A DNA stretch of 64,000 nt from Macrostomum lignano (lineage: Eukaryota), in contig NIVC01001364.1 in NCBI GenBank assembly GCA_002269645.1, forward strand, positions 186,001 to 250,000, in the 5' to 3' direction. Of this stretch, positions 1 to 41,717 are shown one piece after another. The first letter of the stretch is position 1; each line of letters starts with the position of its first letter. The position numbers and the translations under genes are program-made. The notes below the pieces were generated by a model. It saw only the letters and a list, made by a program, of their open reading frames with translations. It ran no database searches and was not told the origin of the DNA.

Positions 1-3000
1 CGGCTGCTGGACAAACCCGGAAAAACCATCCTGGAGACAAGAAGAGCTCTCCTAGTACCTTGGCGCTCCAGTCATCGAAGGAGAATGCTATGGTTGAGGA
101 ATGCGACTCAAGTGCTGCTGATCTCATGATCACGTCATCTGCTAACAAAATACAAGACCGGAAACCGTCACCACAGCGTCAGCATTTTGAATCGGTGAGC
201 ATTGCTGAGTTGAGTTACACTAACGCTGGAAAAGTGCATTCGCTTTACTTAATGAATATCATTTTTATTGGGCCAAAAATATGCTGCAGCTTTCAATGTC
301 TTAGTTTCGATTGTAAAAAAGCAAACTTTATCATGACGTATGCCAAGTCAGCACAATCAATCAAATTTCAGCATATTTGTCGCGGGTCCAGCTAAACCCT
401 CATTGAATGTTTCACATTGACTGTGGGTGCTTCAAGCATCGACTGCCAAACATACTTTCAGACATGGGGTCCAGCTAAACCCTCATTGAATGTTTCACAT
501 TGCCTGTGGGTGCTTCAAGCATCGACTGCCAAACATACTTTCAGACATGGGGTCCAGCTAAACCCTCATTTATTGTTTCACATTGCCTGTGGGTGCTTCA
601 AGCATCGACTGCCAAACATACTTTCAGACATGGGGTCCAGCTAAACCCTCATTGATTGTCGTTCACATTGACTGTGGGTGCTTCAAGCATCGACTGCCAA
701 ACATACTTTCAGACATGGGGTCCAGCTAAACCCTCATTGATTGTCGTTCACATTGAGTGTGGATGCTTCAAGCACCGACTGCCAAACATACTTTTAGACA
801 TGGGGTCCAGCTAAACCCTCATTGAATGTTTCACATTGACTGTGGGTGCTTCAAGCACCGACTGCCAAACATACTTTCAGACATGGGGTCCAGCTAAACC
901 CTCATTGATTGTCGTTCACATTGAGTGTGGATGCTTCAAGCACTGACTGCCAAACAGACTTTCAGACATGGGATCCAGCTGAATCCTCATTGAGTCATAA
1001 TATGTTTACATTAGTTCATCAAAATCAATCATTGTGCAGATGGGCAGCGACGTGACCATCCCACAAGCAGAGGGATCTTCTGCTGATGCTGACGCTGGCG
1101 ACAGCGAACCGTGTGCATCTCGCGATGAGTCGAGTGTAGAGAAGGCGGCTACGAAGAAGACGACTTCCGTTCATAAGTCGCGTGAACAGCTCTCAGCATC
1201 GGCCAGGGTGACGAGAGCTACTCAAGAGGCAGCGGCTGCTGGACAAACCCGGAAAAACCATCCTGGAGACAAGAAGAGCTCTCCTAGTACCTTGGCGCTC
1301 CAGTCATCGAAGGAGAATGCTATGGTTGAGGAATGCGACTCAAGTGCTGCTGATCTCATGATCACGTCATCTGCTAACAAAATACAAGACCGGAAACCGT
1401 CACCACAGCGTCAGCATTTTGAATCGGTGAGCATTGCTGAGTTGAGTTACACTAACGCTGGAAAAGTGCATTCGCTTTACTTAATGAATATCATTTTTAT
1501 TGGGCCAAAAATATGCTGCAGCTTTCAATGTCTTAGTTTCGATTGTAAAAAAGCAAACTTTATCATGACGTATGCCAAGTCAGCACAATCAATCAAATTT
1601 CAGCATATTTGTCGCGGGTCCAGCTAAACCCTCATTGAATGTTTCACATTGACTGTGGGTGCTTCAAGCATCGACTGCCAAACATACTTTCAGACATGGG
1701 GTCCAGCTAAACCCTCATTGAATGTTTCACATTGCCTGTGGGTGCTTCAAGCATCGACTGCCAAACATACTTTCAGACATGGGGTCCAGCTAAACCCTCA
1801 TTTATTGTTTCACATTGCCTGTGGGTGCTTCAAGCATCGACTGCCAAACATACTTTCAGACATGGGGTCCAGCTAAACCCTCATTGATTGTCGTTCACAT
1901 TGACTGTGGGTGCTTCAAGCATCGACTGCCAAACATACTTTCAGACATGGGGTCCAGCTAAACCCTCATTGATTTTCACATTGACTGTGGGTGCTTCAAG
2001 CACGACTGCCAAACATACTTTCAGACATGGGGTCCAGCTAAACCCTCATTGATTGTCGTTCACATTGAGTGTGGATGCTTCAAGCACCGACTGCCAAACA
2101 TACTTTCAGACATGGGGTCCAGCTAAACCCTCATTGATTGTCGTTCACATTGAGTGTGGATGCTTCAAGCACTGACTGCCAAACAGACTTTCAGACATGG
2201 GATCCAGCTGAATCCTCATTGAGTCATAATATGTTTACATTAGTTCATCAAAATCAATCATTGTGCAGATGGGCAGCGACGTGACCATCCCACAAGCAGA
2301 GGGATCTTCTGCTGATGCTGACGCTGGCGACAGCGAACCGTGTGCATCTCGCGATGAGTCGAGTGTAGAGAAGGCGGCTACGAAGAAGACGACTTCCGTT
2401 CATAAGTCGCGTGAACAGCTCTCAGCATCGGCCAGGGTGTCGAGAGCTACTCAAGAGGCAGCGGCTGCTGGACAAACCCGGAAAAACCATCCTGGAGACA
2501 AGAAGAGCTCTCCTAGTACCTTGGCGCTCCAGTCATCGAAGGAGAATGCTATGGTTGAGGAATGCGACTCAAGTGCTGCTGATCTCATGATCACGTCATC
2601 TGCTAACAAAATACAAGACCGGAAACCGTCACCACAGCGTCAGCATTTTGAATCGGTGAGCATTGCTGAGTTGAGTTACACTAACGCTGGAAAAGTGCAT
2701 TCGCTTTACTTAATGAATATCATTTTTATTGGGCCAAAAATATGCTGCAGCTTTCAATGTCTTAGTTTCGATTGTAAAAAAGCAAACTTTATCATGACGT
2801 ATGCCAAGTCAGCACAATCAATCAAATTTCAGCATATTTGTCGCGGGTCCAGCTAAACCCTCATTGAATGTTTCACATTGACTGTGGGTGCTTCAAGCAT
2901 CGACTGCCAAACATACTTTCAGACATGGGGTCCAGCTAAACCCTCATTGAATGTTTCACATTGCCTGTGGGTGCTTCAAGCATCGACTGCCAAACATACT

Positions 3001-6000
3001 TTCAGACATGGGGTCCAGCTAAACCCTCATTTATTGTTTCACATTGCCTGTGGGTGCTTCAAGCATCGACTGCCAAACATACTTTCAGACATGGGGTCCA
3101 GCTAAACCCTCATTGATTGTCGTTCACATTGACTGTGGGTGCTTCAAGCATCGACTGCCAAACATACTTTCAGACATGGGGTCCAGCTAAACCCTCATTG
3201 AATGTTTCACATTGACTGTGGGTGCTTCAAGCATCGACTGCCAAACATACTTTCAGACATGGGGTCCAGCTAAACCCTCATTGATTGTCGTTCACATTGA
3301 GTGTGGATGCTTCAAGCACCGACTGCCAAACATACTTTCAGACATGGGGTCCAGCTAAACCCTCATTGATTGTCGTTCACATTGAGTGTGGATGCTTCAA
3401 GCACTGACTGCCAAACAGACTTTCAGACATGGGATCCAGCTGAATCCTCATTGAGTCATAATATGTTTACATTAGTTCATCAAAATCAATCATTGTGCAG
3501 ATGGGCAGCGACGTGACCATCCCACAAGCAGAGGGATCTTCTGCTGATGCTGACGCTGGCGACAGCGAACCGTGTGCATCTCGCGATGAGTCGAGTGTAG
3601 AGAAGGCGGCTACGAAGAAGACGACTTCCGTTCATAAGTCGCGTGAACAGCTCTCAGCATCGGCCAGGGTGTCGAGAGCTACTCAAGAGGCAGCGGCTGC
3701 TGGACAAACCCGGAAAAACCATCCTGGAGACAAGAAGAGCTCTCCTAGTACCTTGGCGCTCCAGTCATCGAAGGAGAATGCTATGGTTGAGGAATGCGAC
3801 TCAAGTGCTGCTGATCTCATGATCACGTCATCTGCTAACAAAATACAAGACCGGAAACCGTCACCACAGCGTCAGCATTTTGAATCGGTGAGCATTGCTG
3901 AGTTGAGTTACACTAACGCTGGAAAAGTGCATTCGCTTTACTTAATGAATATCATTTTTATTGGGCCAAAAATATGCTGCAGCTTTCAATGTCTTAGTTT
4001 CGATTGTAAAAAAGCAAACTTTATCATGACGTATGCCAAGTCAGCACAATCAATCAAATTTCAGCATATTTGTCGCGGGTCCAGCTAAACCCTCATTGAA
4101 TGTTTCACATTGACTGTGGGTGCTTCAAGCATCGACTGCCAAACATACTTTCAGACATGGGGTCCAGCTAAACCCTCATTGAATGTTTCACATTGCCTGT
4201 GGGTGCTTCAAGCATCGACTGCCAAACATACTTTCAGACATGGGGTCCAGCTAAACCCTCATTGATTGTTTCACATTGCCTGTGGGTGCTTCAAGCATCG
4301 ACTGCCAAACATACTTTCAGACATGGGGTCCAGCTAAACCCTCATTGATTGTCTTCACATTGACTGTGGGTGCTTCAAGCATCGACTGCCAAACATACTT
4401 TCAGACATGGGGTCCAGCTAAACCCTCATTGATTGTCGTTCACATTGAGTGTGGATGCTTCAAGCACCGACTGCCAAACATACTTTTAGACATGGGGTCC
4501 AGCTAAACCCTCATTGAATGTTTCACATTGACTGTGGGTGCTTCAAGCACCGACTGCCAAACATACTTTCAGACATGGGGTCCAGCTAAACCCTCATTGA
4601 TTGTCGTTCACATTGAGTGTGGATGCTTCAAGCACTGACTGCCAAACAGACTTTCAGACATGGGATCCAGCTGAATCCTCATTGAGTCATAATATGTTTA
4701 CATTAGTTCATCAAAATCAATCATTGTGCAGATGGGCAGCGACGTGACCATCCCACAAGCAGAGGGATCTTCTGCTGATGCTGACGCTGGCGACAGCGAA
4801 CCGTGTGCATCTCGCGATGAGTCGAGTGTAGAGAAGGCGGCTACGAAGAAGACGACTTCCGTTCATAAGTCGCGTGAACAGCTCTCAGCATCGGCCAGGG
4901 TGACGAGAGCTACTCAAGAGGCAGCGGCTGCTGGACAAACCCGGAAAAACCATCCTGGAGACAAGAAGAGCTCTCCTAGTACCTTGGCGCTCCAGTCATC
5001 GAAGGAGAATGCTATGGTTGAGGAATGCGACTCAAGTGCTGCTGATCTCATGATCACGTCATCTGCTAACAAAATACAAGACCGGAAACCGTCACCACAG
5101 CGTCAGCATTTTGAATCGGTGAGCATTGCTGAGTTGAGTTACACTAACGCTGGAAAAGTGCATTCGCTTTACTTAATGAATATCATTTTTATTGGGCCAA
5201 AAATATGCTGCAGCTTTCAATGTCTTAGTTTCGATTGTAAAAAAGCAAACTTTATCATGACGTATGCCAAGTCAGCACAATCAATCAAATTTCAGCATAT
5301 TTGTCGCGGGTCCAGCTAAACCCTCATTGAATGTTTCACATTGACTGTGGGTGCTTCAAGCATCGACTGCCAAACATACTTTCAGACATGGGGTCCAGCT
5401 AAACCCTCATTGAATGTTTCACATTGCCTGTGGGTGCTTCAAGCATCGACTGCCAAACATACTTTCAGACATGGGGTCCAGCTAAACCCTCATTTATTGT
5501 TTCACATTGCCTGTGGGTGCTTCAAGCATCGACTGCCAAACATACTTTCAGACATGGGGTCCAGCTAAACCCTCATTGATTGTCGTTCACATTGACTGTG
5601 GGTGCTTCAAGCATCGACTGCCAAACATACTTTCAGACATGGGGTCCAGCTAAACCCTCATTGAATGTTTCACATTGACTGTGGGTGCTTCAAGCATCGA
5701 CTGCCAAACATACTTTCAACATGGGGTCCAGCTAAACCCTCATTGATTGTCGTTCACATTGAGTGTGGATGCTTCAAGCACCGACTGCCAAACATACTTT
5801 CAGACATGGGGTCCAGCTAAACCCTCATTGATTGTCGTTCACATTGAGTATAGATGCTTCAAGCACTGACTGCCAAACAGACTTTCAGACATGGGATCCA
5901 GCTGAATCCTCATTGAGTCATAATATGTTTACATTAGTTCATCAAAATCAATCATTGTGCAGATGGGCAGCGACGTGACCATCCCACAAGCAGAGGGATC

Positions 6001-9000
6001 TTCTGCTGATGCTGACGCTGGCGACAGCGAACCGTGTGCATCTCGCGATGAGTCGAGTGTAGAGAAGGCGGCTACGAAGAAGACGACTTCCGTTCATAAG
6101 TCGCGTGAACAGCTCTCAGCATCGGCCAGGGTGTCGAGAGCTACTCAAGAGGCAGCGGCTGCTGGACAAACCCGGAAAAACCATCCTGGAGACAAGAAGA
6201 GCTCTCCTAGTACCTTGGCGCTCCAGTCATCGAAGGAGAATGCTATGGTTGAGGAATGCGACTCAAGTGCTGCTGATCTCATGATCACGTCATCTGCTAA
6301 CAAAATACAAGACCGGAAACCGTCACCACAGCGTCAGCATTTTGAATCGGTGAGCATTGCTGAGTTGAGTTACACTAACGCTGGAAAAGTGCATTCGCTT
6401 TACTTAATGAATATCATTTTTATTGGGCCAAAAATATGCTGCAGCTTTCAATGTCTTAGTTTCGATTGTAAAAAAGCAAACTTTATCATGACGTATGCCA
6501 AGTCAGCACAATCAATCAAATTTCAGCATATTTGTCGCGGGTCCAGCTAAACCCTCATTGAATGTTTCACATTGACTGTGGGTGCTTCAAGCATCGACTG
6601 CCAAACATACTTTCAGACATGGGGTCCAGCTAAACCCTCATTGAATGTTTCACATTGCCTGTGGGTGCTTCAAGCATCGACTGCCAAACATACTTTCAGA
6701 CATGGGGTCCAGCTAAACCCTCATTGATTGTCGTTCACATTGAGTGTGGATGCTTCAAGCATCGACTGCCAAACATACTTTCAGACATGGGGTCCAGCTA
6801 AACCCTCATTGATTGTCGTTCACATTGAGTGTGGATGCTTCAAGCATCGACTGCCAAACATACTTTCAGACATGGGGTCCAGCTAAACCCTCATTGAATG
6901 CTTCACATTGACTGTGGGTGCTTCAAGCATCGACTGCCAAACATACTTTCAGACATGGGGTCCAGCTAAACCCTCATTGATTGTCGTTCACATTGAGTGT
7001 GGATGCTTCAAGCACCGACTGCCAAACATACTTTCAGACATGGGGTCCAGCTAAACCCTCATTGAATGTTTCACATTGACTGTGGGTGCTTCAAGCACCG
7101 ACTGCCAAACATACTTTCAGACATGGGGTCCAGCTAAACCCTCATTGATTGTCGTTCACATTGAGTGTGGATGCTTCAAGCACTGACTGCCAAACAGACT
7201 TTCAGACATGGGATCCAGCTGAATCCTCATTGAGTCATAATATGTTTACATTAGTTCATCAAAATCAATCATTGTGCAGATGGGCAGCGACGTGACCATC
7301 CCACAAGCAGAGGGATCTTCTGCTGATGCTGACGCTGGCGACAGCGAACCGTGTGCATCTCGCGATGAGTCGAGTGTAGAGAAGGCGGCTACGAAGAAGA
7401 CGACTTCCGTTCATAAGTCGCGTGAACAGCTCTCAGCATCGGCCAGGGTGACGAGAGCTACTCAAGAGGCAGCGGCTGCTGGACAAACCCGGAAAAACCA
7501 TCCTGGAGACAAGAAGAGCTCTCCTAGTACCTTGGCGCTCCAGTCATCGAAGGAGAATGCTATGGTTGAGGAATCCGACTCAAGTGCTGCTGATCTCATG
7601 ATCACGTCATCTGCTAACAAAATACAAGACCGGAAACCGTCACCACAGCGTCAGCATTTTGAATCGGTGAGCATTGCTGAGTTGAGTTACACTAACGCTG
7701 GAAAAGTGCATTCGCTTTACTTAATGAATATCATTTTTATTGGGCCAAAAATATGCTGCAGCTTTCAATGTCTTAGTTTCGATTGTAAAAAAGCAAACTT
7801 TATCATGACGTATGCCAAGTCAGCACAATCAATCAAATTTCAGCATATTTGTCGCGGGTCCAGCTAAACCCTCATTGAATGTTTCACATTGACTGTGGGT
7901 GCTTCAAGCATCGACTGCCAAACATACTTTCAGACATGGGGTCCAGCTAAACCCTAATTGAATGTTTCACATTGCCTGTGGGTGCTTCAAGCATCGACTG
8001 CCAAACATACTTTTAGACATGGGGTCCAGCTAAACCCTCATTGAATGCTTCACATTGACTGTGGGTGCTTCAAGCATCGACTGCCAAACATACTTTCAGA
8101 CATGGGGTCCAGCTAAACCCTCATTGAATGTTTCACATTGACTGTGGGTGCTTCAAGCATCGACTGCCAAACATACTTTCAGACATGGGGTCCAGCTAAA
8201 CCCTCATTGAATGTTTCACATTGCCTGTGGGTGCTTCAAGCATCGACTGCCAAACATACTTTTAGACATGGGGTCCAGCTAAACCCTCATTGAATGCTTC
8301 ACATTGACTGTGGGTGCTTCAAGCATCGACTGCCAAACATACTTTCAGACATGGGGTCCAGCTAAACCCTCATTGAATGTTTCACATTGACTGTGGGTAC
8401 TTTAAGCATCGACTGCCAAACATACTTTCAGACATGGGGTCCAGCTAAACCCTCATTGAATGTTTCACATTGCCTGTGGGTGCTTCAAGCATCGACTGCC
8501 AAACATACTTTCAGACATGGGGTCCAGCTAAACCCTCATTTATTGTTTCACATTGCCTGTGGGTGCTTCAAGCATCGACTGCCAAACATACTTTCAGACA
8601 TGGGGTCCAGCTAAACCCTCATTGATTGTCGTTCACATTGAGTGTGGATGCTTCAAGCACTGACTGCCAAACAGACTTTCAGACATGGGATCCAGCTGAA
8701 TCCTCATTGAGTCATAATATGTTTACATTAGTTCATCAAAATCAATCATTGTGCAGATGGGCAGCGACGTGACCATCCCACAAGCAGAGGGATCTTCTGC
8801 TGATGCTGACGCTGGCGACAGCGAACCGTGTGCATCTCGCGATGAGTCGAGTGTAGAGAAGGCGGCTACGAAGAAGACGACTTCCGTTCATAAGTCGCGT
8901 GAACAGCTCTCAGCATCGGCCAGGGTGACGAGAGCTACTCAAGAGGCAGCGGCTGCTGGACAAACCCGGAAAAACCATCCTGGAGACAAGAAGAGCTCTC

Positions 9001-12000
9001 CTAGTACCTTGGCGCTCCAGTCATCGAAGGAGAATGCTATGGTTGAGGAATGCGACTCAAGTGCTGCTGATCTCATGATCACGTCATCTGCTAACAAAAT
9101 ACAAGACCGGAAACCGTCACCACAGCGTCAGCATTTTGAATCGGTGAGCATTGCTGAGTTGAGTTACACTAACGCTGGAAAAGTGCATTCGCTTTACTTA
9201 ATGAATATCATTTTTATTGGGCCAAAAATATGCTGCAGCTTTCAATGTCTTAGTTTCGATTGTAAAAAAGCAAACTTTATCATGACGTATGCCAAGTCAG
9301 CACAATCAATCAAATTTCAGCATATTTGTCGCGGGTCCAGCTAAACCCTCATTGAATGTTTCACATTGACTGTGGGTGCTTCAAGCATCGACTGCCAAAC
9401 ATACTTTCAGACATGGGGTCCAGCTAAACCCTCATTGAATGTTTCACATTGCCTGTGGGTGCTTCAAGCATCGACTGCCAAACATACTTTCAGACATGGG
9501 GTCCAGCTAAACCCTCATTTATTGTTTCACATTGCCTGTGGGTGCTTCAAGCATCGACTGCCAAACATACTTTCAGACATGGGGTCCAGCTAAACCCTCA
9601 TTGATTGTCGTTCACATTGACTGTGGGTGCTTCAAGCATCGACTGCCAAACATACTTTCAGACATGGGGTCCAGCTAAACCCTCATTGAATGTTTCACAT
9701 TGACTGTGGGTGCTTCAAGCATCGACTGCCAAACATACTTTCAAACATGGGGTCCAGCTAAACCCTCATTGATTGTCGTTCACATTGAGTGTGGATGCTT
9801 CAAGCACCGACTGCCAAACATACTTTCAGACATGGGGTCCAGCTAAACCCTCATTGATTGTCGTTCACATTGAGTATAGATGCTTCAAGCACTGACTGCC
9901 AAACAGACTTTCAGACATGGGATCCAGCTGAATCCTCATTGAGTCATAATATGTTTACATTAGTTCATCAAAATCAATCATTGTGCAGATGGGCAGCGAC
10001 GTGACCATCCCACAAGCAGAGGGATCTTCTGCTGATGCTGACGCTGGCGACAGCGAACCGTGTGCATCTCGCGATGAGTCGAGTGTAGAGAAGGCGGCTA
10101 CGAAGAAGACGACTTCCGTTCATAAGTCGCGTGAACAGCTCTCAGCATCGGCCAGGGTGTCGAGAGCTACTCAAGAGGCAGCGGCTGCTGGACAAACCCG
10201 GAAAAACCATCCTGGAGACAAGAAGAGCTCTCCTAGTACCTTGGCGCTCCAGTCATCGAAGGAGAATGCTATGGTTGAGGAATGCGACTCAAGTGCTGCT
10301 GATCTCATGATCACGTCATCTGCTAACAAAATACAAGACCGGAAACCGTCACCACAGCGTCAGCATTTTGAATCGGTGAGCATTGCTGAGTTGAGTTACA
10401 CTAACGCTGGAAAAGTGCATTCGCTTTACTTAATGAATATCATTTTTATTGGGCCAAAAATATGCTGCAGCTTTCAATGTCTTAGTTTCGATTGTAAAAA
10501 AGCAAACTTTATCATGACGTATGCCAAGTCAGCACAATCAATCAAATTTCAGCATATTTGTCGCGGGTCCAGCTAAACCCTCATTGAATGTTTCACATTG
10601 ACTGTGGGTGCTTCAAGCATCGACTGCCAAACATACTTTCAGACATGGGGTCCAGCTAAACCCTCATTGAATGTTTCACATTGCCTGTGGGTGCTTCAAG
10701 CATCGACTGCCAAACATACTTTCAGACATGGGGTCCAGCTAAACCCTCATTGATTGTCGTTCACATTGAGTGTGGATGCTTCAAGCATCGACTGCCAAAC
10801 ATACTTTCAGACATGGGGTCCAGCTAAACCCTCATTGATTGTCGTTCACATTGAGTGTGGATGCTTCAAGCATCGACTGCCAAACATACTTTCAGACATG
10901 GGGTCCAGCTAAACCCTCATTGAATGCTTCACATTGACTGTGGGTGCTTCAAGCATCGACTGCCAAACATACTTTCAGACATGGGGTCCAGCTAAACCCT
11001 CATTGATTGTCGTTCACATTGAGTGTGGATGCTTCAAGCACCGACTGCCAAACATACTTTCAGACATGGGGTCCAGCTAAACCCTCATTGAATGTTTCAC
11101 ATTGACTGTGGGTGCTTCAAGCACCGACTGCCAAACATACTTTCAGACATGGGGTCCAGCTAAACCCTCATTGATTGTCGTTCACATTGAGTGTGGATGC
11201 TTCAAGCACTGACTGCCAAACAGACTTTCAGACATGGGATCCAGCTGAATCCTCATTGAGTCATAATATGTTTACATTAGTTCATCAAAATCAATCATTG
11301 TGCAGATGGGCAGCGACGTGACCATCCCACAAGCAGAGGGATCTTCTGCTGATGCTGACGCTGGCGACAGCGAACCGTGTGCATCTCGCGATGAGTCGAG
11401 TGTAGAGAAGGCGGCTACGAAGAAGACGACTTCCGTTCATAAGTCGCGTGAACAGCTCTCAGCATCGGCCAGGGTGACGAGAGCTACTCAAGAGGCAGCG
11501 GCTGCTGGACAAACCCGGAAAAACCATCCTGGAGACAAGAAGAGCTCTCCTAGTACCTTGGCGCTCCAGTCATCGAAGGAGAATGCTATGGTTGAGGAAT
11601 CCGACTCAAGTGCTGCTGATCTCATGATCACGTCATCTGCTAACAAAATACAAGACCGGAAACCGTCACCACAGCGTCAGCATTTTGAATCGGTGAGCAT
11701 TGCTGAGTTGAGTTACACTAACGCTGGAAAAGTGCATTCGCTTTACTTAATGAATATCATTTTTATTGGGCCAAAAATATGCTGCAGCTTTCAATGTCTT
11801 AGTTTCGATTGTAAAAAAGCAAACTTTATCATGACGTATGCCAAGTCAGCACAATCAATCAAATTTCAGCATATTTGTCGCGGGTCCAGCTAAACCCTCA
11901 TTGAATGTTTCACATTGACTGTGGGTGCTTCAAGCATCGACTGCCAAACATACTTTCAGACATGGGGTCCAGCTAAACCCTAATTGAATGTTTCACATTG

Positions 12001-13526
12001 CCTGTGGGTGCTTCAAGCATCGACTGCCAAACATACTTTTAGACATGGGGTCCAGCTAAACCCTCATTGAATGCTTCACATTGACTGTGGGTGCTTCAAG
12101 CATCGACTGCCAAACATACTTTCAGACATGGGGTCCAGCTAAACCCTCATTGAATGTTTCACATTGACTGTGGGTGCTTCAAGCATCGACTGCCAAACAT
12201 ACTTTCAGACATGGGGTCCAGCTAAACCCTCATTGAATGTTTCACATTGCCTGTGGGTGCTTCAAGCATCGACTGCCAAACATACTTTTAGACATGGGGT
12301 CCAGCTAAACCCTCATTGAATGCTTCACATTGACTGTGGGTGCTTCAAGCATCGACTGCCAAACATACTTTCAGACATGGGGTCCAGCTAAACCCTCATT
12401 GAATGTTTCACATTGACTGTGGGTACTTTAAGCATCGACTGCCAAACATACTTTCAGACATGGGGTCCAGCTAAACCCTCATTGAATGTTTCACATTGCC
12501 TGTGGGTGCTTCAAGCATCGACTGCCAAACATACTTTCAGACATGGGGTCCAGCTAAACCCTCATTTATTGTTTCACATTGCCTGTGGGTGCTTCAAGCA
12601 TCGACTGCCAAACATACTTTCAGACATGGGGTCCAGCTAAACCCTCATTGATTGTCGTTCACATTGACTGTGGGTGCTTCAAGCATTGACTGCCAAACAT
12701 ACTTTCAGACATGGGGTCCAGCTAAACCCTCATTGAATGTTTCACATTGACTGTGGGTGCTTCAAGCATCGACTGCCAAACATACTTTCAGACATGGGGT
12801 CCAGCTAAACCCTCATTGAATGCTTCACATTGACTGTGGGTGCTTCAAGCACCGACTGCCAAACATACTTTCAGACATGGGGTCCAGCTAAACCCTCATT
12901 GAATGTTTCACATTGACTGTGGGTGCTTCAAGCATCGACTGCCAAACATACATTCAGACATGGGGTCCAGCTAAACCCTCATTGATTGTCGTTCACATTG
13001 AGTGTGGATGCTTCAAGCACCGACTGCCAAACATACTTTCAGACATGGGGTCCAGCTAAACCCTCATTGATTGTCGTTCACATTGACTGTGGGTGCTTCA
13101 AGCACCGACTGCCAAACAGACTTTCAGACATGGGGTCCAGCTAAACCCTCATTGATTGTCGTTCACATTGAGTATAGATGCTTCAAGCACTTACTGCCAA
13201 ACAGACTTTCTGACATGGGATCCAGCTGAATCCTCATTGAGTCATAATATGTTTACATTAGTTCATCAAAATCAATCATTGTGCAGATGGGCAGCGACGT
13301 GACCATCCCACAAGCAGAGGGATCTTCTGCTGATGCTGACGCTGGCGACAGCGAACCGTGTGCATCTCGCGATGAGTCGAGTGTAGAGAAGGCGGCTACG
13401 AAGAAGACGACTTCCGTTCATAAGTCGCGTGAACAGCTCTCAGCATCGGCCAGGGTGACGAGAGCTACTCAAGAGGCAGCGGCTGCTGGACAAACCCGGA
13501 AAAACCATCCTGGAGACAAGAAGAGC
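1..13526 (+). repeat. Large-unit tandem array (10 complete units of ~1229-1981 bp plus a partial), unit = exon + minisatellite-bearing intron
   Basis: The identical 197-aa ORF recurs at 1034, 2263, 3495, 4726, 5957, 7274, 8751, 9983 and 11300. Spacings are 1229, 1232, 1231, 1231, 1317, 1477, 1232, 1317 and 1981 bp. Identity to the terminal copy ends at 13526. Confidence 0.98.
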
Positions 13527-16500
13527 AGTCCTGGTGTCTTGGCGCTCCCGAATTCTTCATCCGGACGTTCTCCCTTAAAGCAGTCTACGACGACGAATGT
13601 TCCGTTGACGAATGAAGTTTCGAATTCAAGGCTGTCTGCTCTTAGAAGTCGTGTTATGAATAAGTTGCGATTTGGTGGTTCTCGATTAAAAAAATTAAAA
13701 GTTGACTTAGATGACAGCAACGAAAGCGAAGAGAGTGATTTCGATGAGGAAGTAGAGTTTGAGAAGGTGATGAATTCCTGTGTGGAAGAAAGTGCTGCCT
13801 CTGGCAATGTAGATGATGTGCCTGAATTCGACTTTGGTGACGTCGAGCTCGAGGAGTTGTCGTCGGATCTACATCCAGCTCTTCAAATGATTGCTGACGA
13901 AAATGAAAAATTGGAGTCGAATGCACAGAAGAAGATGAAGGGCCGATCATTTGAGAAGAAGCGTCATAATTGCGTTTTCTGTAATGAGCTGTTTTCTAAA
14001 ATACGCCGGCATATTATTCGTTGTCATAGTGATCAAGTGGACGTGCAGCGCGCGCTATCTTATGGTTCTAATTCTAATGGTAAGCCTAAGTGAATATGCT
14101 TCTTACATCAAAACTGAATAAATAGTCCACTGGTTTTAATTTTTGAATATTTCTAGTTTGATCTAAATAGTTAAGTTTTAGTTTTTTAAAATGAAAACTA
14201 ATTCTTTCAAATTTTGTCTGAAGCAAGTCAGAATTTACTCGTGCTTCAGTTTGGCACAACAGTTTTATTAGAACGCCTCTATATGTATGATTTAAACTGT
14301 CAGATCGATTGATTCTTTTTGTTGTGATCGTAAAGATTTATATTTAATTGGCTGCCTTTTTTAATTTCTCTGTTAGGTTACAATCGGGAGATGGACAGAC
14401 TGCGACTTCTAGGCGATTTTCATCACAATATTGCTGTACTGAAGGATGAAAAGGACGGTAAAATTATTGTCTGTCGGGAGAAAAGCGTGACCATGGAGTC
14501 TACGGAAGTACACACCTATCTTCCTTGTGTTCACTGCTTTGGATTTTTTTACGGACGTGAAATAAGTCGCCACTGGGACCGCTGCAAATTTAGATCTAAC
14601 TCGAAATCTTCAAGTCGTTCGAATGCCGCTTCGCAAGGAAATTGTCTGCTGCTGTCATCGTGCCTCCCCTCGACGTTTCCTGAAGAATATCAAGACCTGC
14701 TCAGCAGAATGAAAAAAGATCACCTTTCCATTGTCGTCCGCTCTGACAAATTAATTTTAAGTCTTGGGCACTTTTGGTTTGAAGGCTACACAGCTGGAAA
14801 GACAGGCCGACAGATTGTTTCCACTAAGATGAGGGAGCTTGCACGCTTGTTAGTAGCGTTTAGAGAACGTGTAGAGCAGCCGTCCATTGATTTGGAGAAT
14901 GCACTAACCGCTCGTCATTTCGATGATCTTGTTGAGGCGACAAGAACAGTCGCAGGATTTATGAGCAAGAAAAGCGAAGCGACATCTGACAGCTTTGACA
15001 TTCCTTTCATTGCGCTAAAAATCGGCTTTAGTCTCAAGACGGCTGCCGAAGTCTCCATGGTTTTCGCCTTAAAAAGTGATCTATTATCAAAGGTTGAGGA
15101 AAGACGAAATTTTATTTCTGTCTTTGAGAGTCTTTGGAAGCGAAAAGTTTCTACGATCGCACATCTGACTTTGAAGGAAAGAAAAGCCGACAAAGCCGAA
15201 ACTCTGCCCTTGACGGAGGACATTACAACCATCACATGCTATTTAAAGCAGGCGCTGGCACAGGTTGTTGATGATAATCTATCCGAACCTGCCTACTGGA
15301 AAAGCGTTGCTGAGCTAGTTGCAATCCGCCTCATGATTTTGAACAGAAGGCGAGCGTCGGAAACCTTCAAACTGACGCTTAAAGACTGGGAAGCAGCAAA
15401 AAAGCTCGATCAAGAATATGACGACACTACTGACTCTCTACTGAGTGAGCTTGAGTTAAAGATTAAAGGGCGCATGTTTCTTCCGTATGTCCGCGGCAAA
15501 CGAGCAGGAAAAAAGGTACCTCTGCTCGTGCCACTAGAGGTGGCCACTCTCATCGATAAGCTCATAAGCACACGTCATTCACCAACTGGCAACGAGTACG
15601 TTTTTGGCATGCTCAATGGAATGCGTTATTTATCACCGTTTGAATCCATTCAAAACGTCACTTCAAAGTGTGCAGATCTCAAACATCCTGAACGCTTGAC
15701 GTCAACAAAACTGAGGAAATATGTGGCAACAGTATCACAAATCCTCGAGTTGAATGAAAACGAATTGGGCTGGCTGTCCAGACATCTAGGCCACAGCCTA
15801 CAAGTGCATCATACGTTCTATCGAATTCACGAGCGAACAATCGAGCTAGCAAAAGTCGGTAAGCTGATGCTTGCGATTGAATCTGGGAAGCTAGATCAGC
15901 TGAAAGGAAAGAAACTGGAGGAAATCGAAGTTGATGACATTGATGTCGATTTGGATGACTCGAATGAGGCCGAAGTTGCTTCCAAGACAAAGAAGTCAGC
16001 AAAGTTTTCAAACGAGAATGAACAAAGCAGCAGCAAAACTTTGAGTAGCAAGTCTGGTTTGATTAGAAAGCGACCACAACCAGCTAATTCCACCGAAAGC
16101 AAATCAAAGCGTCCATGTCGCATATCCTCCGGAGAAGCATCAGAAAATCATGACGAAGAGCAGACACAGCTGGATTTTCGTGGTGCGCCTCTCTCTTTGA
16201 AGGAATTAAAAGAATCTAAGAAAAAGAGAAAGCCGGAGACAAAGTCGCATCTGCATTCTCCGCCTGATTCCGCCGAAGATGATCCTTCCTACGAACCTCC
16301 ATCTAAAGTCAGCAGAAAGAAAGACCGAAAACTGAAGCAGGTGCATGTCAAGTGGTCAGAAGAGGAAGACGCAGCGTTCAAACGTGTTTTCGACAGAATG
16401 CTTGAAGAATCAGGTGGAAAAGTTCCTGGGTTAAATGCGCTGCTTAGGCTGAAGCAAGATGAGCCAGCCCTGAAAGATCGATCTGTTCTGAAGCTTAAAA

Positions 16501-16538
16501 GCAAGTTTTTTAACGAAATGCAGAAACTTAAGAAATAG
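1..16538 (+). CDS. Crypton-type tyrosine recombinase gene, 5'-incomplete, including tandemly repeated N-terminal exons (spliced model)
   Basis: Predicted exons: <1-194, 1040-1426, 2269-2655, 3501-3887, 4732-5118, 5963-6349, 7280-7666, 8757-9143, 9989-10375, 11306-11692 (each 387 nt, TGCAG|ATGGGC...GAATCG|GTGAGC, phase 0-0), 13287-14079 and 14377-16538. All junctions keep frame. Inclusion of the repeated exons in the mRNA is inferred from splice motifs only. Confidence 0.55.
384..13240 (+). repeat. Nested 83/85-bp minisatellite clusters inside each array intron
   Basis: Unit GGGTCCAGCTAAACCCTCATTGAATGTTTCACATTGACTGTGGGTGCTTCAAGCATCGACTGCCAAACATACTTTCAGACATG (83 bp; an 85-bp variant has ATTGTCGTT). 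Copy numbers per intron inferred from spacing: 7,7,7,7,7,8,10,7,8,16. Confidence 0.96.
13287..14079 (+). CDS. Penultimate exon of YR gene: S/T-rich and acidic region plus C2H2-type zinc finger
   Basis: ORF 13281-14093 contains CVFCNELFSKIRRHIIRCH (CxxC-x9-H-x4-H). Acceptor TGCAG precedes 13287. Donor G|GTAAGC at 14080 (phase 1) matches acceptor TGTTAG|GT at 14376/14377, giving ...SNSN-G-YNREMDRLRLLGDFHHN in frame. Confidence 0.8.
14377..16538 (+). CDS. Main exon of tyrosine recombinase (phage-integrase fold) with CxxC-H-C finger and C-terminal Myb/SANT-like domain
   Basis: Uninterrupted 715-aa ORF. YLPCVHCFGFFYGREISRHWDRC finger; YR box motifs LNRRRASE (R), VRGK (K), TSTKLRKY (HxxR position read as TxxR), RHLGHS (H) and HTFYR (catalytic Y). 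Tail KWSEEEDAAFKRVF...LKDRSVLKLKSKFFN resembles a Myb/SANT helix-turn-helix. Confidence 0.88.
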
Positions 16539-17601
16539 CTGGTTACGAGTATGCTTAAGTCTCCAACCTATAATGGTGCTCTTTCCTTGCTGCACTGAAC
16601 TCACGTTTTGTTCAATGATACATGTATTTTCTCTAACCTTATAATTAGTGGCTGAGATTGATTAAATATTATGTCACTTCGATAGCGAAAGCAACTTTAG
16701 ATTTGCAAGACACAAAGTAGCTTGCCATAAAAATTTCTGTGCCAAAATATCCGAATTTTTTTTAATCTCTCTCCAAAATTTGATGAATACATTCATTCAT
16801 CATTATAAATTCATTCAAATTTTAGCCTACCGAAGTGACATGGAGGCAGTTAGCCCCGAAAATTTTCCTATTATTCAGTTGTCGCGGTATACCGCACTAT
16901 TTTCACAATTGATTTGTAACGCTTCTCCCACGTTTCTATAAACTGTGAATTTAAACTATAAATGCATCTAAAAACTTTGGCTTGGGCTGGCTTGTTGAAT
17001 GTCAAAACTGCAGTATTTTTTGCACTGCACGTCTAAAAAATCGAAAAACTTCCAATTATTCTCTCTTGTTTAAGTTTTGCTTTGCAGTTTAGTAATTTTT
17101 GTCAAATTTAGCATTTTACCACCTTTATGTCATCATATTTGATGAGTGTTAATCATTTATAGTTATAGCTCGTAGCTCGTATGATCCAAATGTATTTGCG
17201 GTACCTTTACAATAATTACTCACTCAGTCCTACATCGCTAAATTTTTTAAACAAATAATACAAATAAAAATTTTAACATCGCTTTCATGCTTTACAGGAA
17301 AACTTGAACAGCAGTTCAGAACAATAACTATCGACTGTTAAAAATCTTTGTTGCTCTAGATTTTTATATTGGTCCACGTACACCATCATGTTCTTAAAGG
17401 TCCGTTTAAACCTGGTCTACCTAACAACATAGTTCGAATAGTTTAATTTACTCGAATTGAAGACCTTTTGAAATTAAAAAGGCAACAGTATTTTCCAAGC
17501 GTCTCAAATTAAGCTGGTTCCCCGATTTTCTAACCATAACTAATTGGTCCACCTAACGCATTGTCAGAACAACGGTCTATGTAACCACACATACACTAGT
17601 A

Positions 17602-17781
<180 letters not shown>

Positions 17782-17999: not shown

Positions 18000-41717
<23,718 letters not shown>

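Follow-up and report, generated by a model that had tools for sequence, protein, structure and literature searches.

Cryptons, the least understood class of eukaryotic DNA transposons, have been described by Goodwin et al. (2003), by Kojima and Jurka (2011; PMC3212892) and in a study of the active element CryptonF-1_cRei (PMC9977147). Crypton activity was first observed only in 2023, and the circle-crossover model of Goodwin has been confirmed for a Chlamydomonas Crypton (PMC9977147). Here we analyse a stretch of 64,000 nucleotides (nt) of the flatworm Macrostomum lignano, positions 186001-250000 of contig NIVC01001364.1 (C1364), hereafter the window; the whole assembly comprises 764 Mb in 5269 contigs. 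We consider it probable that the left part of the window belongs to a 38.4-kb Crypton-like tyrosine-recombinase (YR) DNA transposon that is inserted in a (TGTC)n microsatellite and carries an array of cassette exons within its single gene. Like Cryptons, the element has a single YR gene, lacks a reverse transcriptase (RT), shows no target-site duplication and is flanked by direct repeats that equal the target sequence. Such flanks agree with the model in which an excised circle crosses over with a nearly identical target. Unlike in Cryptons, an entire (TGTC)n tract serves as terminal direct repeat, against the described 4-6 bp, and a 13-bp terminal inverted repeat (TAGTGTATGTGTG / CACACATACACTA) is present. 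The protein differs as well: its N-terminus holds a chromodomain, where relatives have SET or BRCT, it carries two zinc fingers and ends in a Myb-like tail, and no Pfam match to DUF3504 or GCR1_C was found in any member of the homologue set. The element is Crypton-like by architecture and not a proven member of a named Crypton clade.

DIRS, Ngaro and PAT elements also encode a tyrosine recombinase; unlike them, the element has no split or inverted long terminal repeats and, by Pfam search and a survey of open reading frames (ORFs), no RT/RNase H coding capacity. Chromoviruses are Ty3/gypsy long terminal repeat retrotransposons with a DDE integrase and a C-terminal chromodomain. They resemble the element in that an integration enzyme is fused to a chromatin reader, whereas the element is a YR DNA element in which the chromodomain is N-terminal and a repeat spacer precedes the enzyme. 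Clusters of recombinase or transposase sites are exemplified by the arm sites of lambda Int and the subterminal repeats of Ac/Ds and En/Spm. Near the ends of the element, too, a short motif recurs several times on one strand over a few hundred bp, but here the motif, a candidate binding site, is amplified to 45-184 intron copies, kilobases from the end. In the symmetric-exon arrays of host genes (nebulin, mucin-type), phase 0-0 exons are duplicated in tandem with their introns and the repeat number varies. The array of the element is built in the same way, but it lies within a transposon, its units are ~99% identical, each intron contains a minisatellite, and the copy number varies between element copies in one genome. 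In the papers that could be searched, neither these elements nor Cryptons in Macrostomum were described, nor was a YR transposon with chromo or SET domains or exon arrays, nor an intragenic array of cassette exons in a Crypton; the gene models are present in public databases only as hypothetical proteins.

Ends, insertion sites and the encoded recombinase

The boundaries of the element were defined by comparison of two copies with different flanks, which share a 5′ end at C850:278350 (C1364:165140) and a 3′ end at window position 17781. In both copies (TGTC)n was present on both sides, with the 13-bp inverted repeat directly inside it. From inverted repeat to inverted repeat, the C1364 copy spans 38.4 kb (C1364:165187-203598), and window 1-17781 represents its 3′ 46%; the C850 copy is 8.8 kb long and contains two cassettes. 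A DNA search of the same genome identified three full-length copies with different flanks (C1364, C850 and C1010) and at least six copies (C4340, C1814, C2377, C503, C230 and C128) with one common internal deletion, in which window position 14601 is joined to ~17330. Cassette arrays were located upstream in every copy. Sequences 98-99% identical to the flanks of the C1364 copy are found at C1972 and C2886, where they enclose nothing but one continuous (TGTC)n and so represent paralogous empty sites. There is thus a filled-versus-empty polymorphism without target-site duplication, and this pattern is what a conservative recombinase crossover within a microsatellite would be expected to leave. 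Insertion may proceed, as in the model of Goodwin, by conservative crossing-over in which the (TGTC)n carried by an excised circle recombines with a (TGTC)n in the genome, the tracts being bracketed by the 13-bp inverted repeats. Outside the single gene, ~1.1 kb at each end is non-coding, the longest stray ORFs encoding 60-91 amino acids (aa). With exact ends, a defined (TGTC)n target, filled and empty sites and non-autonomous derivatives, excision and integration become testable in an animal that is amenable to transgenesis. A domesticated host gene was also considered and rejected on the grounds of the filled and empty sites, the several insertion loci and the family of deletion derivatives.

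The copies with the common deletion have features of their own. They contain a T7-to-T6 frameshift at 14544-14550 and an extra copy of GGTCCAC at the junction, and their product is a 326-aa protein with both zinc fingers and without the recombinase (P0011 and P0012, named C2H2-type domain-containing protein). This zinc-finger product could act as a regulator in trans.

The two exons at 13287 and 14377 are spliced into one 984-aa ORF. Neither this protein nor the 129-aa module encoded by each cassette gave a match in a Pfam search, and a search of PDB sequences with hidden Markov model (HMM) profiles yielded nothing useful. An exhaustive HMMER search collected 4520 representative homologue clusters. 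In 35 homologues, the arginine of NRRRASE, the lysine of GKR, the arginine of STKLRK and the histidine and tyrosine of GH...HTFY were invariant or at least 90% conserved, and in the alignments these residues were spaced as expected of tyrosine recombinases. An AlphaFold model was obtained with a pLDDT of 90 and a pTM of 0.75. The top 15 matches of this model in a Foldseek search of the PDB were all tyrosine recombinases, among them XerH, XerA, IntI, lambda Int and Cre (probability 0.96-1.0, E 8e-4 to 7e-2), with TM-scores of only 0.3-0.5. The predicted structure is a two-domain integrase fold, and on this model the tyrosine recombinase assignment holds. An earlier note, made from the letters of the window, had read the gene as a YR and the element as Crypton-type; the structural matches bear out the former, and the latter is a fair label by architecture.

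A cassette array inside one gene

Tandem Repeats Finder and direct reading showed that window 1-13548 is a higher-order tandem array with units of ~1.23 kb. Each unit has a 387-nt open segment, followed by a unique stretch of ~190 nt, an 83-bp minisatellite in 7-16 copies and ~46 nt before the next TTGTGCAG/ATGGGC (slashes mark exon borders). Because the copy number of the inner minisatellite varies (7-16), unit length ranges from 1229 to 1981 bp within the window. A script found nine complete 387-nt segments in the window, all stop-free, with ATG first and with the borders TTGTGCAG/ (ending in TGCAG/) and /GTGAGC, and the array extends ~20 kb to the left of the window, to C1364:~167 kb. In every copy, three GT-AG mini-exons situated ~1.2 kb in from the 5′ end encode a 71-aa N-terminus, the last of them ending in phase 0. 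This N-terminus contains a chromodomain (Pfam PF00385, 29.2 bits against a gathering cut-off of 25.1; residues 14-47 of the deposited model P0001). The gene order from 5′ to 3′ is therefore chromodomain mini-exons, cassette array, zinc-finger exon, and the exon with zinc finger, recombinase and Myb-like region, and since the chromodomain exons precede the array, the cassettes lie within the gene as internal exons. Every exon junction follows the GT-AG rule, the phase is symmetric, and 24 of the 24 cassettes of the C1364 copy, which has 24 cassette donors and 25 acceptors, are 387 nt long. A product with all 24 cassettes included would have a computed length of 4151 aa. The composition of the 129-aa module (S/A/T/K/E-rich) predicts disorder.

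Splicing of the cassettes was assessed from the deposited annotation of the assembly, which consists of StringTie/TACO RNA-seq assemblies and mapped de novo transcripts, with ORFs called by TransDecoder and without ab initio prediction (PMC5730564). The models P0001 (C850) and P0010 (C1364), 1184 aa each, comprise the 71-aa chromo N-terminus, one module and the 984-aa protein, and the 5′-partial P0009 (C1010; 1235 aa) comprises two modules and the gene. The protein junction QRQHFES/MGSDVTIPQ is present in all three. As the annotation is derived from RNA only and the junction occurs in three models, these point to RNA with GAATCG joined to ATGGGC. These results support the view that the 387-nt segments behave as frame-preserving cassette exons and that splicing takes place at the cassette donor. 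Of the two cassettes in C850, the model there includes only the second. The module of P0010 has the T and S variants of the cassettes at 11306 and 7280 on the same contig. That the acceptor beside the ATG is a spliced-leader trans-splice site only was set aside as less likely, since this fails to explain the cassette donor junction in the models.

Most of what the earlier note had described was borne out by this analysis. The cassettes with their TGCAG/ and /GTGAGC borders, phase 0-0 and freedom from stops were recovered by the script at the positions given there, the two coding differences that it had counted among nine copies (T/S and C/S) are the only ones, and the last unit does lead in frame through the zinc-finger exon into the YR exon as one 984-aa ORF. 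Its claim that cassette splicing keeps the frame agrees with the GAATCG/ATGGGC splice implied by the three RNA-derived models. Copy number, which it had called expandable, differs between the genomic copies that we compared: C850 has two cassettes, C1364 has 24, and the number differs again in other copies. Two points lack support or call for correction. An N-terminal polymer of at least 10 x 129 aa is not borne out by the models, which hold one or two cassettes and one of which skips a cassette, nor by any longer deposited protein; and the gene is not simply fronted by the array, given the three chromodomain mini-exons upstream. The proposal that the expansion is very recent stands for the units of this family, which are young, and not for the architecture itself.

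The age of the design was judged from variation within and around the array. The nine cassettes of the window vary only at nt 172 (T/S) and nt 296 (C/S). In the unit at 13287, the first 262 nt are 98-100% identical to the cassettes, after which identity drops sharply from ~99% to ~70% for ~30 nt and then ceases. Such an edge resembles the limit of homogenisation more than the breakpoint of a fresh duplication. Because of this drop, and because the same design is found in a second family and in other phyla (see below), the cassette architecture is in all likelihood old and kept homogeneous. Window 4732-13286 shows, in addition, a super-period of three units: the units at 4732, 5963 and 7280 and those at 8757, 9989 and 11306 both have the order T/C, S/C, T/S, with unit lengths of 1231, 1317 and 1477 against 1232, 1317 and 1981. 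This suggests a ~4-kb duplication step of three units.

A mechanism can be proposed from this arrangement. The array would grow and shrink by unequal recombination or slippage between units. With frame-neutral cassettes, any subset of which could be spliced, the recombinase would remain translatable at any array length. The modules may then form a flexible spacer of variable length between the chromatin-reading N-terminus and the DNA-binding and recombinase body, which would keep chromatin targeting apart from catalysis. The coding region tolerates, and perhaps uses, runaway tandem duplication: elements of 9 kb and 38 kb encode the same enzyme with different spacer lengths, because every unit is a symmetric exon.

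A second component of each unit is a short motif in the minisatellite. The 12-mer GGTCCACCTAAC is subterminal at both ends of the family to which the window element belongs (family 1; C850 ~278665 and window 17546), and the 83-mers of this family all start with the variant GGGTCCAGCTAAACCC (also given as GGTCCAGCTAAAC), which occurs 184 times on the plus strand and 0 times on the minus strand of the C1364 element. In a second M. lignano family (family 2, locus C29), GGTCCACCTAAC itself is found 46 times on the plus strand and 0 times on the minus strand; 45 of these copies lie in the ~71-bp minisatellite of the array introns and one in the 3′ subterminal region, where it is followed by GGTCCACGTAAC and a short (TGTC)n. 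The minisatellites of the two families fail to align outside the motif core. In the catfish relative described below, each array intron and the 3′ subterminal region share the 15-mer TGGGTCCCCACATTG, the subterminal copy lying ~50 bp from a long GT-rich microsatellite. The motif copies may be binding sites for the protein of the element itself. If so, the intronic blocks would add sites in cis, and protein length and the number of cis sites would change together.

Related designs and competing explanations

The comparison with other lineages carries most of the weight of this report. Family 2 (P0002) is 56% identical to the window element in the recombinase region and has at least eight copies, each with 8-10 cassette matches 0.7-2.1 kb apart. 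At its C29 locus, an RNA-derived model strings together four 225-nt (75-aa) cassettes with strong splice sites (...ttattctctaacttcctag/GAG ... AAA/gtgagt), and four older 216-nt cassettes upstream, with both splice sites intact, differ from them by an in-frame 9-nt indel. The catfish Hemibagrus wyckioides has eight 114-nt (38-aa) cassettes (cag/GTG...GAG/gtatga) with a 461-bp period, adjoining a SET-domain piece. The element of the sea cucumber Apostichopus japonicus has eight 99-nt (33-aa) cassettes with a ~763-bp period, preceded by a SET domain. Among seven aligned units of this species, 25 of the 99 exon columns vary and 0 of 99 contain gaps, against 204 gap columns of 702 in the flanking introns. 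N-terminal tandem repeats of unrelated sequence were found in at least 20 of the best 150 homologues. In one homologue with a BRCT N-terminus and in two metagenomic ORFs the repeats are coded contiguously, without splicing, and repeats within such intronless ORFs are necessarily translated. Since the same design recurs across lineages, a repeat spacer between a chromatin-type domain and the zinc-finger and recombinase body is, on this comparative evidence, a trait of the family, of which exon cassettes would be one recurrent encoding. Recurrence in a flatworm, a teleost and an echinoderm with unrelated cassettes argues for selection or a strong shared mutational mechanism and not for accident. 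It also matters for annotation, as arrays of this kind will be mistaken for satellites or for giant repeat proteins. The relatives, too, end next to GT-rich microsatellites: in the catfish this is a tract of (GT)n/(GTGTGAGT)n at least 1.6 kb long (positions 10190-11810 of that locus), and in family 2 a short (TGTC)3 (~567135). The group as a whole may target microsatellites.

A Crypton-like YR transposon with a functioning cassette array has to be weighed against several results that speak the other way. The window protein has no Pfam integrase match, and its homologues score 13-19 bits against the PF00589 cut-off of 27.1; four of 35 homologues match PF00589 at E<=0.01, with a best value of 2e-7. 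The histidine of the HxxR motif is a conserved threonine in this family. The RNA-derived models include only one or two cassettes, no deposited protein of ~1290-4100 aa contains these modules, and none has three or more family-1 cassettes. The models are built from short reads with up to 1000 multi-mappings allowed, and the analysis covered the models (PMC5730564). The cassette-to-cassette and cassette-to-last-exon junctions are identical in sequence, and the 387-nt exon is longer than the short reads; given this and the multi-mapping, the number of cassettes per mRNA is not readable from the models. The polypyrimidine tract of the cassette acceptor is weak. The family-1 cassettes are too young for a test of selection, with three variable sites in the 387-nt exon and four in ~188 nt of adjacent intron. 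For the sea cucumber and for two metagenomic relatives without introns, a search for k-mers shared between repeats and subterminal regions yielded only short matches, probably due to chance, and a binding role for the motif is one that we infer. The exact length of the array rests on one long-read assembly.

Some of these points would be accounted for by a neutral or degenerative expansion driven by the minisatellite, with the cassettes mostly skipped, or the 24-cassette copy transcriptionally dead, and with products of 0-2 modules that are of no use to the element. The short models, the skipped cassette of C850, the absence of longer models, the lack of measurable constraint in family 1 and the weak acceptor all agree with this, as does the presence of arrays in the deletion derivatives that lack the recombinase. 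We nevertheless regard it as unlikely, because a second family and two other phyla have independent cassette arrays that are unrelated in sequence, cassettes that have diverged by up to 25% retain their frame and splice sites, a family-2 model contains four consecutive cassettes, and N-terminal repeats are translated in intronless relatives. The strict strand bias of the intronic motif, with a core conserved between families whose repeats do not otherwise align, also argues against it. A long array could, furthermore, be an artefact of assembly, the true locus having as little as one unit or a few: identity between units is ~99% across 31 kb, which is longer than typical reads of the PacBio era, and the assembly is known to be redundant. 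This is highly improbable in view of the non-periodic markers in the array (T/S, C/S and lengths of 1149-1981 bp), the partial copy of the 5′ region inside it, nine other loci with arrays of other sizes, and arrays in unrelated assemblies of other species. It is barely credible that each unit is a separate small gene with its own ATG and a 196-codon ORF running through GTGAGC. Every cassette does start with ATG, and beyond GTGAGC a further 67 codons are free of stops in the units of this copy (for example window 1427-1627) and in those of C850 and C1010. However, in the units of C1814, C2377 and C503 a 1-bp deletion leaves only 46 codons of this read-through tail, although their 129 codons are intact, the tail is hydrophobic and unlike the module in composition, the RNA-derived models splice at the donor, and the cassettes of the other three lineages lack an ATG start. 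The 67-codon open frame, which is present in the C1364, C850 and C1010 units, is in itself odd for intron sequence, its chance being ~0.04.

The transposon with an intragenic cassette array thus remains our preferred reading. An extension of it is conceivable, although less likely than not, namely that a metazoan-wide and as yet undescribed group of microsatellite-targeting YR transposons carries a self-expanding intragenic module. Each unit would add a frame-neutral exon for a disordered spacer behind the chromo, SET or BRCT domain together with an intronic block of the motif bound by the recombinase itself, and unequal crossing-over would tune protein length and the number of cis sites jointly, under selection at the level of the element.

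Feature positions and neighbouring observations

The positions of the features of the element are listed in Table 1.

Table 1. Features of the C1364 element. Positions refer to the window unless a contig is named; slashes mark exon borders.
Feature	Position	Strand	Details
(TGTC)n at 5′ flank	C1364:164970-165181		
Inverted-repeat partner	C1364:165187-165199		TAGTGTATGTGTG
Chromodomain exons	C1364:166315-166608		upstream of window
Cassette exon, 3′ part	1-187	+	cut by window edge; cassette start C1364:185808
Cassette exon	1040-1426	+	387 nt, 129 aa, phase 0-0, TGCAG/ATG...TCG/GTGAGC
Cassette exon	2269-2655	+	
Cassette exon	3501-3887	+	
Cassette exon	4732-5118	+	
Cassette exon	5963-6349	+	
Cassette exon	7280-7666	+	C to S variant
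Cassette exon	8757-9143	+	
Cassette exon	9989-10375	+	
Cassette exon	11306-11692	+	last complete cassette
Intronic 83-bp minisatellite blocks	384-13240	all +	ten blocks, one per unit; 84 copies in window
Minisatellite blocks 1-5	384-993, 1616-2222, 2845-3454, 4077-4685, 5308-5916	+	
Minisatellite blocks 6-10	6539-7233, 7856-8710, 9333-9942, 10565-11259, 11882-13240	+	
Zinc-finger exon	13287-14079	+	first 262 nt cassette-like, then acidic region and first C2H2-like zinc finger (13971-14027)
Intron	14080-14376	+	GTAAGC...TTAG
Last exon	14377-16538	+	second zinc finger 14526-14585; recombinase core ~14718-15938
Catalytic R	15342-15362	+	in NRRRASE
Catalytic K	15495-15515	+	in GKRAGKK
Catalytic R	15702-15722	+	in STKLRKY
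Catalytic H...Y	15786-15824	+	in LGHSLQVHHTFYR
Myb/SANT-like C-terminus	from 16350-16391 onward	+	in last exon
Stop codon	16536-16538	+	TAG
3′ non-coding and subterminal region	16539-17598	+	
3′ subterminal motif copy, direct	17371-17384	+	GGTCCACGTACACC
3′ subterminal motif copy, direct	17399-17412	+	GGTCCGTTTAAACC
3′ subterminal motif copy, direct	17414-17425	+	GGTCTACCTAAC
3′ subterminal motif copy, direct	17546-17557	+	GGTCCACCTAAC
Terminal inverted repeat, 13 bp	17586-17598	+	CACACATACACTA
(TGTC)45 at 3′ flank	17602-17781	+	
Spliced junction, exon 3 to cassette or last exon			AAAACGATGACG/ATGGGCAGCGAC (also written AAAACGATGACG/ATGGGCAGC)
Spliced junction at cassette donor			CATTTTGAATCG/ATGGGCAGCGAC (also written CATTTTGAATCG/ATGGGCAGC); unspliced form GAATCGGTGAGC
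Predicted tryptic peptide			QHFESMGSDVTIPQAEGSSADADAGDSEPCASR

Upstream of the window, the array of the C1364 copy is interrupted at C1364:171737-173275 by a partial copy of the 5′ region that includes chromodomain exons (172366-172659), and three cassettes thereby lie between two potential gene starts. Among the homologues, P0016, P0017, P0018, P0024, P0041 and P0158 are models of 2400-4150 aa in which 2-5 stretches resemble the recombinase and the sequence repeats with internal periods of 480-1550 aa. Gene callers may have fused tandem copies of the element in these models, or the models may have another origin. On the other side of the element, a TRP-channel gene on the plus strand (window 17886-~40000) starts ~200 bp downstream and encodes ankyrin repeats, transmembrane segments and a TRP-box region. 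Its introns are crowded with minisatellites, ~20 different ones that measure 0.2-2.2 kb; among them are a 14-mer repeated 123 times at 19281-21007 and an 11-mer repeated 197 times at 23458-25628.

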